DNA of 63,315 nt, filler included, from Choristocarpus tenellus KU-1152 (taxonomy: Eukaryota > Protista > Phaeophyceae), in the NCBI GenBank assembly GCA_964200185.2. It is 10 parts of 10 records of this genome, joined end to end, with 100 filler letters (N's around TTAATTAATTAA, not from the genome) between each part and the next. Parts side by side here need not be neighbours in the genome. Positions count along the whole stretch, not along the records: positions 16,620 to 22,600 come from CAXNAD020009250.1; 9 more parts are not named here. One strand, written 5' to 3'. Below the pieces are notes generated by a model. The model was not told the origin of the DNA and did no database searches. It worked only from the letters and a program-made list of their open reading frames with translations. The translations under genes and the position numbers were made by a program. Every line of letters begins with the position of its first letter. The first letter of the stretch is position 1. Below are positions 16,620 through 22,600 of this stretch, one piece after another.

Positions 16620-16643
16620 CCCCCTCTGGCCACTGCCACTGAC

Positions 16644-18080
16644 CTGGCAGTACTTCGCTGGTCGCATGCCCTCGAAGTTAAATTGGGGCTCTGTCATGCA
16701 GTCAGGGCCCTGACATTTGCGCTGGAGACTGACCATGTCCCCATGCCGGTGAGTGGCGCAGCGGATACGCTTGCGGTCTGACTCATAACCATAACTGGGT
16801 AGCTTCTCGCACCCCAACTCTTCGCAGGTCCGTCGTTGCACAACTGCCATCCCGTCTATTCGGTGCGCACGGCAAAACACAGGTCCCGTAGAGTCCCCTT
16901 CGAATCCGCAACGGGCACCCGCGCCGCACCCTGGGTGCTGGCAGGGCTTGGTAGACACATTGACGCAGCCCTCTGGCTTGTGGTCTTTGCAGAAGCGTCG
17001 AATGCGCTCGATTGGGTCGCCAAAGTTGGGCTGCTTACGGCACCCAGTGGCCTCGCACCTCTTCACGTGCACATTGTCCATGCCCTCCAACTTGTGGTCA
17101 CCACAAAGAATCGCCCGTCGCTGGCCAGGCCAACCCCACAGAGGCTGGCGGCGGCATCCCCCTTGCTCACAACGGCGCTGGGCCACGTTCACCATGCCTA
17201 CTTCCTTGTGTGCCAAGCAAAATTTGGCACGCTCTCCTTCAAAGCCAAAGCTGGGAATTATCTTGCAGTTAATAGCTTCGCAATGACGGTGCTGGACATC
17301 CACCATACCCTCCAGTTTATGAACCGAGCAAAACCGCATCTCTTCCCCCGAATACCCAAAGCGAGCAGGGCGCCCGCAGCCTTCCTCCTGACACAAAACG
17401 CCCACCTTGTACACCATGCCCTCCCCACGATGTTGCTTACAGAAGCGTCGGCGGTCACCCTCATTGCCGTAAAGAGGGTGACGGCAGCAGCCAGGCGCCT
17501 CACAGCGCTTACCGAGGAGGTTGATCATCTCGGGTTGCTTATGCTGGGTGCAGAATCGCAGACCCTCACCCTCGAACCCGAAGCTAGCCGTCTTCTGGCA
17601 CATAGGAACCTCGCAGTTTCGCCTTCGGAGGTCGAACATGCCTTCGACCTTGTGTTCATCGCAACCGAAGACATCGCGTGCATTGTTTCCCCAACGGGGG
17701 AATGATGTGCACCCAAACTCGATGCATTGCCTGCGTTGACGCTGCCCAGGAGGCCTAGGACTGACCAGTCGACGGCTTGTGATACGACAGCTCTCATCAC
17801 CGATCCCTGCTGGTGGCAGCGTCTCTCCCTGAGCTATAAGACTAGTAGTGGCCGGTTTTGTCCACTCCCTGATCTTGGAGAGCTCCAATTCGAGCTGGCG
17901 CTTGGTCTGCCACTTCGCCTCCAAGGCACCAGGTGTGGCCTGTTGTACATCCTCATCTGTTAGATCGGCCTCTCTACGGAAGGCCTCTGACGACATGGGA
18001 AACTCATTGTCCTTAGAGTTCGATAGATAGTGGAAGATAGAGGCATGCAGCCTCTTGCGCTGCAGCGCTGTGAGGGACAT
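16644..18080 (-). CDS. LIS1-like LisH/coiled-coil N-terminus fused to ~10 EsV-1-7 cysteine-rich repeats; 3' partial
   Basis: N-terminus MSLTALQRKRLHASIFHYL..EAFRREADL..GALEAKW..QLELEL parallels LIS1 (MVLSQRQRDELNRAIADYL..FKKEAEL..GLLEKKW). It is followed by 37-39-aa units C-x4-C-x3-P/A-x-F/Y/W-G-x(n)-C-x2-H-K/R-x2-GM-V-N/D. Probable donor CAG|GTCAGT at 16644/16643. Confidence 0.88.
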
Positions 18081-18495
18081 GGGGAATCGTTCAGTGTGTA
18101 ATCAACATTGATTGGTTAATGATGGAGGAACTGGTGTGGAATGTTGATACGTTTGTATGGGGATACGGGTAGGACTGATCTACTCACTTCAATTTAAAAA
18201 AACTCAACTCTCAACTCTCAACCAGAAGACACAGAGTAATCAGCATTGATTGAGAAGTGCAACACCAGTGGTATTTACTGATAGGCTCAAAGACGAGAGA
18301 GGAAATCACGTGACCAGCAACAACGACGGAATGGTTGAGGGTGCGGTCGAAGAGACGAAGCCTATGAGGTACCGTAGGTGGTTCGTGTAACAACACACAC
18401 CTCTATTTGGACACCATCCACGATACACCAATTCTTACCTCCTAACACGGTCCTCTGTCTGAAGACCACCAGGTTTCTTTCGGTCGGCTTTGATC
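18081..18495. promoter_or_regulatory. Putative bidirectional promoter (LisH-EsV-1-7 gene / RNASEH2A)
   Basis: Divergent start codons 415 bp apart on one contig. Confidence 0.5.
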
Positions 18496-20486
18496 ATGAG
18501 TTCTATTCCACTCCAATGCTTGCAAGATGACAAAGGTGGAGTAATTTTGGGCATTGATGAGGCAGGACGTGGCCCCGTCCTTGGGCCAATGGTATACTCA
18601 GCAGCATTCTGGGCTGACTCGGATAACGAGGAGGTGTCTGCCATGGGATTTGACGACTCGAAGGCGCTTTCTGGAGCTCGAAGGGACGATCTTTTTGAGC
18701 GTATAAAGAAGGTGGGCTGCGGTCACTGCTATATCGGAATAGGTAGGTGGACTTGGCCCCACGTTAAATGACATTAACTACAATTCTTACTTATCGCCCA
18801 CCGCTCAAGAGTGCTGTAACCCTGCTCGGAATCTCATGACTACAAATCGTCAAAACGAGGCTTCACTATCTCGTGCGAGATAGCTCTTTGAAGAGCTGGA
18901 GATGCTACAACGTGGAGGAGGGAGTGACTTAGTCGTGAATTCATAACACGCAAGTAGTGTTGGCCCCATCAAGATCCGTGGTGCACCTATTTTTCCAGTC
19001 CATCATATCCACCAATCAACCTTTGCCGTAACAGACCCCGCAGGTGGGGTGGGTGCTCCGACTTCTTTCAGCAAAGGAGCTGTCGGCCAAGATGTGCCGT
19101 AAGACGCCATACAGCCTCAATGCCATATCCCATGATGCAGCCATCGAGATGATCAGGCTCGCACAATCCGAGAACGTCAAGATCGCCAAAGTCTTTGTAG
19201 ACACTGTAGGGGACCCGTCGTCATATCAAAATAAGTTAGAGAGGTAAGGGATGCCCCTTTCCTCGTGCTACCCTCACCCTCCCCCCGCATTGGTGCTTCA
19301 AACCCTTAGCATTCTTCCAACCCTGACAGACTCAACCACTGCCACGGTTCCATAATTGATTTTACCTCGCTTTTGTTGTGTTATTAAAGAGTCCCACTGC
19401 AGACTATGGCCTTGACTGGTCGATACTGTGCATACGCTGCACTTGAGGTCAGTCAGAGCTTCGTTTCCCTTGCCCATACAACAACGTACTTCCCGTTTGG
19501 TCATTTCAGCAAAAAACTCTTCAAGAATACACATACTGAGGGATATATATAGAGAGAGATGCAGATACAGATGTATGTATGCTATATTTTTTATTTTTGG
19601 GATGTAATATCATGTTTAACCTTCGGAGTAGAGTGGCTTGTGTGATGATTACAGAACTGTGGGTACAAGCTATTGCTTACCCAGCACACCAGAGGAAGGC
19701 ACAGGAAAACCTCTCTTCATAACTACAAATGTTGGATTTTTTTTTTCTCCTTGCATGAGGCTGCCGACCTCCTTTAAAGAAAAAGAAATTTAGAAGAAAG
19801 GATATCCCTGCAGGTACAAGGTGTGATGTGGGCGGTAATTTTTTATTGGTTCTGGGATGTCAAAATATAGGTACAGACACAAACCTCCCCTACTTCCAGA
19901 ATATAGTGGTGATCCTTGGGGCTGGCATAGCTTACCTGAGTCAAACCATAAGAAATTGTTTTTTCAATTTCTCCGTCTTCATGGAAACAATGTGCACGGA
20001 GTGAGAGGGCAAGGGAAGCTGAAAATCGAAAAATGACGACGCTGTTTGAAATCAAAGTGGCAACGAGCTTGATCGTGGAAGTATGTGTGTATACTCTCCT
20101 CGGCCGCAGGGTCAATTGGTTGGGTTTGCGGGTGCATGATGTTACGATATTTGATTCAGCGGGTTGAAATTGGGGTCAAGCTGCCTGGTGGTGGAGTGCA
20201 CAGCTGAGTCTGGTGCCAGCCTTTTGTGACTGTGTTGTTAATACGATGGCCCCAAAGAAGCTGGCCACGTTAGGGAGTTGCAGAGGGTACAAGTTAAATT
20301 GGGCTGCGAGAAGAGAGAAATACGGCGTGCGAACAAGAAAGGCCTCCTTAAGTGAAATAATTGTTGGAAAAGGGCAAGCAACGGGCGTAAGCTTGAATCA
20401 GATAACGCTCTTTGAAAACATGGATGGCTACTGAAGTTATACCCGCGTTCAGTTCAACGTAGAGAGATCTTGACTCGATCAGAGTC

Positions 20487-20523
<37 letters not shown>

Positions 20524-21297
20524 GTTTTTTTTTTTTTTTTCTTGTGCCTTCATTCTTTTTTTCTTTTTTTTTCCCCCCTTCCTCTGTCCCNNNNNNNNNN
20601 GAGTGTAAAAAAAGTTAAAAGCGAGTACAATCCAACGTAAAAGAAACTTGACTCGATCAGAGTCAAGATTTTTTTTTTTTTTTTTTTTTCCCGGACAACG
20701 AGATAGTGTTGAGAATGAAATGAGCCTACATTGTGTTGTACGTCTTTGTCCCCCTCTTCCCCTGACCCACGAAGGGAAGTTAGACGCGTGAAATGTGCAG
20801 GTTCTCCCATCTCCTCCCTCCCTAGAGTTTATTAGCGTTTTCATCTTCATTTTTTTTTTTCTGAAGTACGTTCTATGTAAAGTGATTTTTTTCTTCCATT
20901 TTTCATGTTCTGAATCTTAAAGAAATATATATATATTCTATATATATATATTTATGTATATGTGTGTGTTTCTGAGGTCCCTTCATTTGACTCTTTCTCA
21001 TGTATACATAGTATGTATGTAAATAGCGTACATAAGGACGATGGCTTGTTTGTACTTAAATTGGTGTCAGCATACGCGCCTTAGATTTGCAGGTGCTCAC
21101 GTCTGGGGTCCCCTAGGCACATGTATTCCCCACAGCTCATGTCTCTCCAAACCCCAAGCTCCTGAACTGAGCCACTAGACTATACCCATGGCTTTTATCC
21201 ATTCCCCAGGGAGTTCGGCTCAAGCATCAAATTCACAGTGGCGAAGAAGGCGGACAGTCTCTATAAGACCGTTAGTGCTGCGAGCATCATCGCCAAG
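18496..21297 (+). CDS. RNASEH2A: Ribonuclease H2 subunit A, 3' partial; exons 18496-18711, 19035-19243, 21210-21297
   Basis: LGIDEAGRGPVLGPMVY, DDSK, SLNAISHDAA, VFVDTVGDP, AKKADSLYKTVSAASIIAK; phase-compatible GT-AG junctions. Confidence 0.96.
20452..20689. repeat. Duplicated hairpin (CTTGACTC-GATCA-GAGTCAAG) + poly-T either side of a 10-N gap
   Basis: Copies near 20468 and 20647; N gap at 20591-20600. Confidence 0.7.
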
Positions 21298-22600
21298 GTT
21301 GGTTTATGCTTCCTTTTTTTTGCCTGGGTTGCTTGTAGTGTGCTTACAATAGTGGAGTCGATTCTGCCCGGCTGTTCGAGATACTGTTTATACTTGATGT
21401 TGGACTAAACAGCTGATGTTATGATTGTGGTTGAAGTTGAAGTTGAAGTTGAAGTTGTTTCCTCTCAAGTCATGGCCCGTGTCCGTTTTACATCTCTTTT
21501 TTTTTTTACTGATGATACCGAGGTGGAAAGACGTAAGTATTGAGACAGGCGTTTCTTTTGCTTGATTTATTTAAATATTTTGCTAGAGCTCTCCAAGAGC
21601 TCTGTAGTGACCACTTTGTCTTTCCTTTGATGTGGAGGAAATATTATGGCTGGGGCACAGGCAAGATCTACCGTTCCCCAATGGTCAGAGCCGACTATAT
21701 CATTAGCCCTGTCCTAGTGATTGTCATGGAAGGCGTCCTCCCGGTCCAGTGTACTAGGGGTTGTGAGTGTACTCCATTGTGTTACTTCTAAAATCATTGT
21801 GCATGCAGCAGTTGAAGCATGCCATTGCTAGATGTTAGGGTTAGGGTTACATATTTCCTGCGGAGATGTGACGACTTCATCACCAGACAGACAGAGAGAG
21901 AGAGATAGAGAGAGAGAGGTACAAGTGTCTCAATCATTGTGTTCTGAAGTATGCAATTACAGACTCGATGAAGAGCATGCCTCCCATCATTGTTTAAACC
22001 ATGAACTGCTACAAACTACAGCGATAAGATTGACAGTTTCACATGTTGATAATGTTACAAATGCTGACATTGCCCATCCCCACCAAGCTCCAATGACATC
22101 AGCACAAGCATTCCTGTTTTCCTGCCCCCTCCTCCCCCCTCCCCGCACTCTCTCGTGTCATTTTAACCCTAACTCTCAGCTTAGAGAGGAAGGCGGTTTG
22201 CTCTAGCCTGCTTGAGCCTGCAACGTTCACCCTAAATCCCTCAAGTCATTCACTGTATTTACTTCTATAGCACTAATTACTTGGTATCACGTTGAGATAT
22301 TGTATATTTCGCTCCAAAACTTGTTGGTAATATTCAACTCTAGAGTACAAACAATACTGCCCTTCGATTCAAGAATACTGCCACTGTAGCGCCACTGTAA
22401 CTCCTGGGCTGCTCCTGTAGCAACCAACCCATAGAGCGAATCAAATGCCCTACACACCACCGGTGACCTTGCTCCTAGTCAATCCTCATTGTAATGCCCA
22501 TGAAAATTATATCCCTTCCTCAGACATCCCCCCCCCCCCCCCCCCCCCCCCCCGCCCCCCTCCCCCCCCCCCCCCCCCCCCCCCCCAAACCCCCCCCCCC

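Follow-up and report, generated by a model that had tools for sequence, protein, structure and literature searches.

Here we describe a brown-algal gene whose product carries a LIS1-type LisH module at its extreme N-terminus, followed by a tandem array of EsV-1-7 Cys3His repeats. The gene was found in a stretch of 63,315 nucleotides from the genome of Choristocarpus tenellus KU-1152 (GCA_964200185.2), referred to as the window, which joins 10 parts of 10 records with 100 filler letters between each part and the next; it lies in the piece at positions 16,620 to 22,600, which comes from CAXNAD020009250.1. An original prediction, made by reading the window without database searches, had placed a fusion of the two domains at 16644-18080, and these limits are exact: a minus-strand open reading frame (ORF) begins with ATG at 18080 and continues uninterrupted in one exon of 479 codons, whose coding part closes at CAG followed by the splice donor GTCAGT, with 16644 as the final exon base. 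The prediction was right about the architecture but covered the first exon only, as later exons of the orthologues encode an 11th repeat together with an acidic tail of ~160-190 residues. Our working model, which we hold with moderate confidence, is that the product is a homodimeric, zinc-finger-like repeat scaffold and probably a regulator.

We searched the N-terminal region against Pfam, where the gathering cut-offs are 27 bits for LisH_PAC1 and 25 bits for EsV_1_7_cys. LisH_PAC1 (PF24951) was the sole family found in residues 1-110 up to an E-value of 10 (E 4.8e-6, 26.6 bits; 23.1 bits on the whole protein). It was matched by 10 of 10 orthologues, with a best E-value of 1.1e-7, whereas the generic LisH family (PF08513) was matched by none of the 10 at E-values up to 0.1. 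The precomputed Pfam assignments of the protein collection give PF24951 for two of the orthologues (P0007 and P0011). When all PDB sequences were searched by phmmer with the single sequence, the LIS1 N-terminal domain (1uuj) ranked first (E 0.0098, residues 2-71) and full-length LIS1 chains came next; a profile built from 10 orthologous N-termini again placed 1uuj first (E 7.9e-4), and neither search found a LisH protein other than LIS1. The profile alignment pairs Met1 with Met1 and continues across the LisH motif and the G.LE.KW turn, covering G51, L53, E54, K56 and W57, into the next helix. A LisH motif that is followed by G.LE.KW and a coiled coil is a layout that, as far as is known, is specific to LIS1. 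In the same alignment human LIS1 shares ~33% identity with the module over 66 residues, and at 16 of the 25 positions that never vary among the orthologues within residues 1-67 it is identical to the profile consensus (M1, L3, Q7, R8, L11, I15, Y18, L19, F34, L40, G51, L53, E54, K56, W57 and L63). When the 110-residue N-terminus was compared exhaustively by phmmer with 1.8 billion representatives, the search returned no LIS1 at E 0.001 and yielded only three orthologue clusters and a spurious repeat protein (P0077), so that the link to LIS1 depends on profiles and fold.

The predicted fold leads to the same family. In the AlphaFold2 (AF2) model of residues 1-80 (confidence score pLDDT 76) helices span residues 5-21, 28-37, 42-47 and 52-74. 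Comparison of this model with the PDB by Foldseek gave LIS1 N-termini as the top seven matches (probability 0.95-1.0, E 0.015-0.12), with the LisH domain of TBL1 next, and VIA-align yielded a Z-score of 7.5 for 1uuj (chain D; root-mean-square deviation 3.9 Å, 76 of 79 residues), compared with 6.1 for TBL1 and 5.6-5.7 for SSBP. A feature search of a protein atlas with the module, which we treat as a lead only, returned LisH-type clusters (LisH, BRWD1_N and LisH_PAC1), all scoring below 0.9. The likeness of the N-terminus to LIS1 is thus real but of moderate statistical strength: each line taken singly is moderate, and all lead to one family. The LIS1-type LisH domain expected at this position agrees with the best match in both profile and fold comparison, the window copy scoring just under the cut-off of the only Pfam family that it matches.

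We also modelled the module as a dimer by folding two copies of residues 1-85, along with controls, in three runs. The interface score ipSAE was 0.37 in each of the three runs and 0.00 for the best control; as the original prediction had proposed, the N-terminus is therefore predicted to homodimerise. The runs share at least 74% of the contacts, with a partner pLDDT of at least 64, and the modelled interface is symmetric, being formed by helix 1 (residues 3, 7, 11, 15 and 19), helix 2 (residues 26-38) and residues 53-58. In a microbial benchmark 21 of 30 solved one-chain pairs attained the ipSAE mark, as against 0 of 23 solved single chains; in eukaryotes the corresponding counts were 17 of 29 and 0 of 30, with only 1 of 7 reaching the mark among proteins that have no older solved relative.

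The EsV-1-7 array is beyond doubt. EsV_1_7_cys (PF19114) matched in 10 stretches (E 9.1e-95, 310.6 bits), and a regular expression picked out nine complete C-x4-C-x15-17-C-x2-H units that recur every 37-39 residues, the first at residue 119. With a 10th repeat, which halts after its third Cys at the splice site and is split by the intron, the array agrees with the roughly ten tandem C3H repeats of the original prediction. An alignment of 58 four-repeat segments, taken from the window gene and 45 relatives, leaves only four invariant positions in each unit, namely C, C, C and H. The AF2 model of repeats 2-5 (pLDDT 84) is a string of short beta-hairpin beads with no helices, and the array is basic, with an isoelectric point (pI) of 8.9. 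Foldseek against the PDB gave no solved relative of the repeat fold, its matches (nsp13 zinc-binding domain, LIM, B-box, RING) having E-values of at least 2, and a VIA-wide search with the repeat fold gave chance-level matches only (Z at most 2.5). The ESM Atlas returned only other EsV-1-7 clusters, mostly from Nucleocytoviricota. Pfam revealed no WD40 domain after the LisH module, showing only EsV_1_7_cys in the window protein, and the later exons of the orthologues, with the 11th repeat and the acidic tail, have no WD40 either.

Both domains are encoded on the same transcript. Three runs contain this DNA, none of them recorded as RNA. One of the three, run X3, is of no recorded kind, but as its contigs are spliced it behaves as an RNA (transcriptome) run. 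A 2911-nt contig of this run follows the genome without interruption from 18016 to 16644 and departs from it precisely at 16644, beyond which it reads KHKADGMVDV, completing the C-x2-H of repeat 10 (FCQ/KH) in agreement with the next exon of the orthologues (KHKADGMMDVVSRKC). As the contig spans 18016-16644, LisH from residue 22 onward and all repeats lie on one transcript contig, with no intron inside the 479-codon exon. The fusion hinged on transcripts joining the two parts, and they are indeed joined, within one exon and on one contig. There is no intron between the LisH module and the repeat array that would be a trace of the shuffling of a host module suggested by the original prediction.

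Exons were compared one by one with those of the orthologues, the downstream exons of the window gene lying outside the piece. The intron that splits repeat 10 occupies the same position in all orthologues and is the only one common to all. A further intron, after NCK in repeat 5, occurs in the orthologues and is absent from the window (~17258), and in Ascophyllum nodosum an additional intron follows HVKR. The 11th EsV-1-7 repeat and the conserved acidic tail (pI 4.6-5.0) are encoded by the final exon of the orthologues. The tail is rich in Gly, Leu and Asp; G-L-D/E motifs recur in it, and it also has a short patch of basic KR residues. Beyond the 11th repeat this exon gave no Pfam match.

At least seven orthologues have the same N-terminus and repeats. 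They come from five Logan assemblies (P0003-P0007), two more (P0009 and P0011), the ENA assembly L006 and A. nodosum (P0075, CAN0141375.1; L002 10001-15069, GCA_964200345.2). The public annotation of A. nodosum splits the gene into a partial product of 129 residues, which corresponds to the LisH part, and a product of 621 residues; the linker between these two annotated products contains a long poly-Ala stretch. Among the 95 proteins examined the module is confined to orthologues of this gene. In pairs with estimable dS, the ratio of nonsynonymous to synonymous substitution rates (dN/dS) lies between 0.02 and 0.2 for the N-terminus and between 0.03 and 0.07 for repeats 1-5, dS being saturated in the remaining pairs; repeats 1-5 have a dN of 0.06-0.27 and 67-90% amino-acid identity. 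The linker varies in length from 39 to 119 residues, is 26-31% identical to that of the window and has a dN/dS of 0.14-0.18, a range that comes from two pairs only. These ratios indicate purifying selection on the gene. The N-terminus of the window copy is 56-60% identical to the others, which are 70-93% identical among themselves, which makes the window copy the most divergent of the set and suggests an earlier-branching lineage.

The gene stands head-to-head with a gene for RNase H2A, an arrangement that is kept in three other contigs (L001, L004 and L005) and leaves ~200 bp between the transcripts in the window. In these three contigs it occurs once beside RNase H2A and not as a tandem array. 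We considered that the prediction might be a gene-prediction artefact or a pseudogene, against which the transcript, the conservation and the low dN/dS weigh, or a retrocopy, a reading we rejected as the neighbour is the same as in the orthologues. We conclude that the gene is nuclear, belongs to a brown alga or close relative, and is conserved, transcribed and spliced.

The module can be compared most directly with that of the dynein regulator LIS1 (PAFAH1B1, PAC1, NudF). As in LIS1, it occupies the very N-terminus, and its helices follow the same order, with the two-helix LisH motif, the G.LE.KW turn and a long helix; it is predicted to form a symmetric homodimer through the same elements. 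Unlike LIS1, which ends in a C-terminal seven-bladed WD40 propeller, the protein continues with a linker and EsV-1-7 repeats, and it differs further in its low identity and in a Pfam score just short of the cut-off. As no WD40 propeller follows the module, the gene is not a LIS1 orthologue, and nothing ties it to dynein. An N-terminal LisH oligomerisation module followed by a partner-binding repeat domain is also found in TBL1/TBLR1, LEUNIG and TOPLESS, transcription scaffolds that combine LisH with repeats. In these proteins the repeats are WD40 propellers, and the module of TBL1 is a tetramer, unlike the dimer predicted here. TBL1 provides the second-best fold match, whereas neither the Pfam scan nor the PDB sequence searches gave any sequence-level match to TBL1, LEUNIG or TOPLESS.

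With the EsV-1-7 family (PF19114) the gene shares the tandem Cys3His repeat and its place as a brown-algal host gene, but it differs in carrying a recognisable second domain: a 2026 preprint reports that none of the EsV-1-7 genes of Ectocarpus carries a further Pfam domain (10.64898/2026.04.27.720984). IMMEDIATE UPRIGHT (IMM), a developmental regulator, is described as a protein with a unique N-terminal domain and five EsV-1-7 repeats (10.1101/2024.02.19.579948). Judged from this published description, with LisH and, in the orthologues, 11 repeats on our side, the gene is unlikely to be an IMM orthologue. Another protein that joins an EsV-1-7 array to a small known interaction module is P0015, from a JGI metagenome, in which the array is combined with a PTM/DIR17-type Tudor domain (E 1.7e-8; weak Agenet and LBR-Tudor matches). 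This partner is of the chromatin-reader type, its source is no brown alga as far as known, and the protein is not orthologous to ours; the fusion gives a weak hint of a chromatin context for the EsV-1-7 family. In a further protein, P0001, an EsV-1-7 array is followed by ~250 C-terminal residues that have no Pfam match.

In the working model residues 1-75, comprising LisH and the short coiled coil, would most likely give an obligate symmetric homodimer, as in LIS1, and a presumably disordered, fast-evolving linker would lead to the basic Cys3His array. Each repeat probably holds one zinc via its C, C, C and H in a small beta-hairpin knuckle. Two such arrays, joined at their N-termini, could bind nucleic acid, chromatin or a protein partner with avidity, and the acidic tails may recruit further factors. 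The charge layout, with basic repeats set against acidic tails in the orthologues, appears to fit a scaffold and was counted in its favour. A nuclear or regulatory role may be suggested by analogy with the LIS1, TBL1 and LEUNIG/TOPLESS scaffolds, by the role of IMM and by the view of EsV-1-7 as a possible new zinc finger (10.1101/2024.02.19.579948), and the module itself may descend from LIS1. Among the three functions that the original prediction had put forward, a LisH adaptor or scaffold, a LIS1 decoy and a variable-repeat receptor, the evidence favours the first.

Several points weigh against this reading. The LisH_PAC1 score of the window copy is marginally below the Pfam cut-off, the E-values against the PDB reach only 1e-2 to 8e-4, and those of Foldseek miss the 0.001 mark. 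A Z-score of 7.5 lies in a range that VIA calls common for helical models, and the LisH folds of TBL1 and SSBP are within 1.5-2 Z of LIS1. Since the LIS1 dimer has already been solved, the success of the dimer model may reflect the network's memory of that structure, and it demonstrates likeness without proving binding; the pLDDT of the dimer model is only 64-65, and the predicted interface residues fall on invariant positions in 11 of 21 cases, where ~8 are expected, which is no clear enrichment. As the searches gave no solved relative of the repeat fold, zinc and ligand binding are only inferred. Finally, the module was found in no full-length annotated protein among those searched.

As an alternative, the module could be a generic LisH dimeriser of independent origin that resembles LIS1 through constraints shared by all LisH domains, as the closeness of the TBL1 and SSBP folds (Z 5.6-6.1 against 7.5), the moderate E-values to LIS1 throughout and the several LisH-type families in the atlas search, none reaching 0.9, would allow. 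We consider this explanation doubtful, given that the orthologues match LisH_PAC1 alone and never PF08513, that LIS1 is the sole LisH protein in the PDB sequence searches and that the alignment with LIS1 begins at Met1 and, beyond the LisH motif, takes in G.LE.KW and reaches into the coiled coil. A second alternative is that the N-terminus still pairs with LIS1 of the alga itself, in heterodimers that would either poison LIS1-dynein or tether the array to dynein. No relative known is closer to the module in sequence and fold than LIS1, and the core residues invariant among the orthologues are largely those identical in human LIS1, yet the overall identity to human LIS1 is low. LisH domains are known to form homotypic dimers, and the module is conserved on its own across orthologues so deeply diverged that dS is saturated, with no need for a LIS1 partner. 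We thus regard a decoy or tether as improbable. Marginally less probable again is the related notion that the module is a captured copy of the dimerisation domain of the alga's LIS1 that still pairs with LIS1 and couples the array to LIS1-dynein; were it true, repeats that are shared with viruses and expanded in brown algae would be linked to nuclear positioning or cell polarity in development.

The remaining alternatives concern the array. The EsV-1-7 family is much expanded, tandemly arrayed and common to Nucleocytoviricota, which might suit a dimeric receptor with a diversifying recognition surface, for instance for sensing viruses or self and non-self. Such a receptor fits poorly with repeats that are conserved in number and sequence and evolve at the low rates given above, that keep position-specific features of individual repeats between species, and that belong to a gene present once per contig beside RNase H2A; we judge it very unlikely. 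Least probable of all is an integrated gene of a giant virus (phaeovirus) in place of a host gene. EsV-1-7 repeats do occur in EsV-1 and many Nucleocytoviricota, and the best non-orthologous matches came from Logan, ENA and JGI assembly contigs. A phaeovirus insert would be an intron-less gene within a viral block, but we found a spliced transcript, spliceosomal introns at conserved positions and a housekeeping neighbour, RNase H2A, that is retained in the three contigs named above, and a pattern scan with the N-terminal alignment gave no match to the module in viral or JGI metagenome contigs. A homodimeric repeat scaffold remains the reading that we favour.

The divergent neighbour was identified by Pfam RNase_HII matches (E 1.2e-17 and 2.5e-6). 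Its gene has several introns and can be followed on the plus strand over 18288-19247, with a leader exon (18288-18366), a 96-nt GT..AG intron (18367-18462), a first coding exon that extends to ~18711 and a further exon near 19044-19247. A second contig of run X3 starts at or before 18288 and skips the GT..AG intron at 18367-18462. Elsewhere in the piece a 22-nt palindrome with a long T run occurs twice, at 20469-20490 and 20647-20668, ~180 bp apart; the two copies flank an assembly gap of 10 N (20591-20600) and could represent either a small repeated element or a duplication introduced in assembly. The piece closes, at 22528-22600, with a poly-C run of ~73 bases that reads as a poly-Pro ORF, is of low complexity and holds no gene. 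An Rfam scan of the 16,620-22,600 piece found no RNA family. Table 1 lists the positions of the features.

Table 1. Features of the LisH-EsV-1-7 gene, its surroundings and its orthologues. Positions refer to the window unless an orthologous record (L001, L002, L004) is named.
Feature	Position	Strand	Basis
First coding exon of the LisH-EsV-1-7 gene (479 codons)	16644..18080	-	ORF, run X3 contig, orthologous exons in L001-L006
LIS1/PAC1-type LisH, G.LE.KW turn and short coiled coil, residues 1-75	17856..18080	-	Pfam, PDB profile, AF2, Foldseek, VIA, homodimer model, dN/dS
Pfam LisH_PAC1 match, residues 7-43	17952-18062	-	PF24951
Predicted coiled-coil helix, residues 52-74	within 17856..18080	-	AF2 model
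Pro/Gly-rich linker, residues 76-112, variable in length and sequence	17745..17855	-	Orthologue alignment
EsV-1-7 Cys3His array, residues 119-479 (nine complete repeats and an interrupted 10th)	16644..17726	-	PF19114, repeat table, AF2
5' splice site GTCAGT of the intron splitting repeat 10 (FCQ / KH...)	16638..16643	-	Sequence and run X3 contig
Inter-gene region, presumed bidirectional promoter and 5' leaders	18081..18287	.	ATG at 18080; neighbour transcript start at or before 18288
Divergent neighbour RNase H2A (RNase HII family), 5' part	18288..18711	+	Pfam RNase_HII, spliced run X3 contig
Orthologue introns and exons compared for the repeat-5 intron	L001 3950-4600; L002 11110-12893, 13100-13560
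Last exon of orthologues	L001 5502-6125; L002 14392-15069; L004 5265-5936

The architecture appears not to have been described before, as the original prediction had supposed: neither a paper nor an annotated protein family with it turned up in the literature and proteins searched. A literature search found no publication combining EsV-1-7 with LisH and nothing relevant for brown algae and LisH, and the Phaeoexplorer supplements contained neither LisH nor the peptide motifs of the module. Among the annotated proteins searched there was no full-length model with the module, but only fragments of this gene and ORF calls made in the prokaryote style. A search with residues 1-80 of P0005 returned only the seven Logan orthologues; it covered proteins of 190-607 residues, a range that excludes the spliced models of ~750 residues, so that it says little about annotated proteomes. 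A word-index search with window residues 1-115 listed 346 candidates, none of them significant, which reflects a limit of the tool, as the orthologues were found by the exhaustive search. Both domains are known and their combination is not; this is not a new kind of system.

In brown-algal genomes the EsV-1-7 proteins make up the largest orthogroup, numbering up to hundreds of genes, and giant viruses have them too; to our knowledge, no mechanism has been established for any of them. CRISPR tools are now available for brown algae (PMC12853178). Public gene models miss the gene described here, as its division into two products in the A. nodosum annotation illustrates. The gene also represents a case in which a LIS1-type LisH module seems to be reused outside the LIS1 family. 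As a conserved, syntenic and expressed member with a well-understood type of dimerisation domain, it would give the EsV-1-7 family a concrete and testable mode of action, that of a dimeric scaffold, and may provide a first biochemical handle on this family, with a small, soluble N-terminal domain, in a gene that occurs once per contig, as a tractable entry point for biochemistry and CRISPR work.

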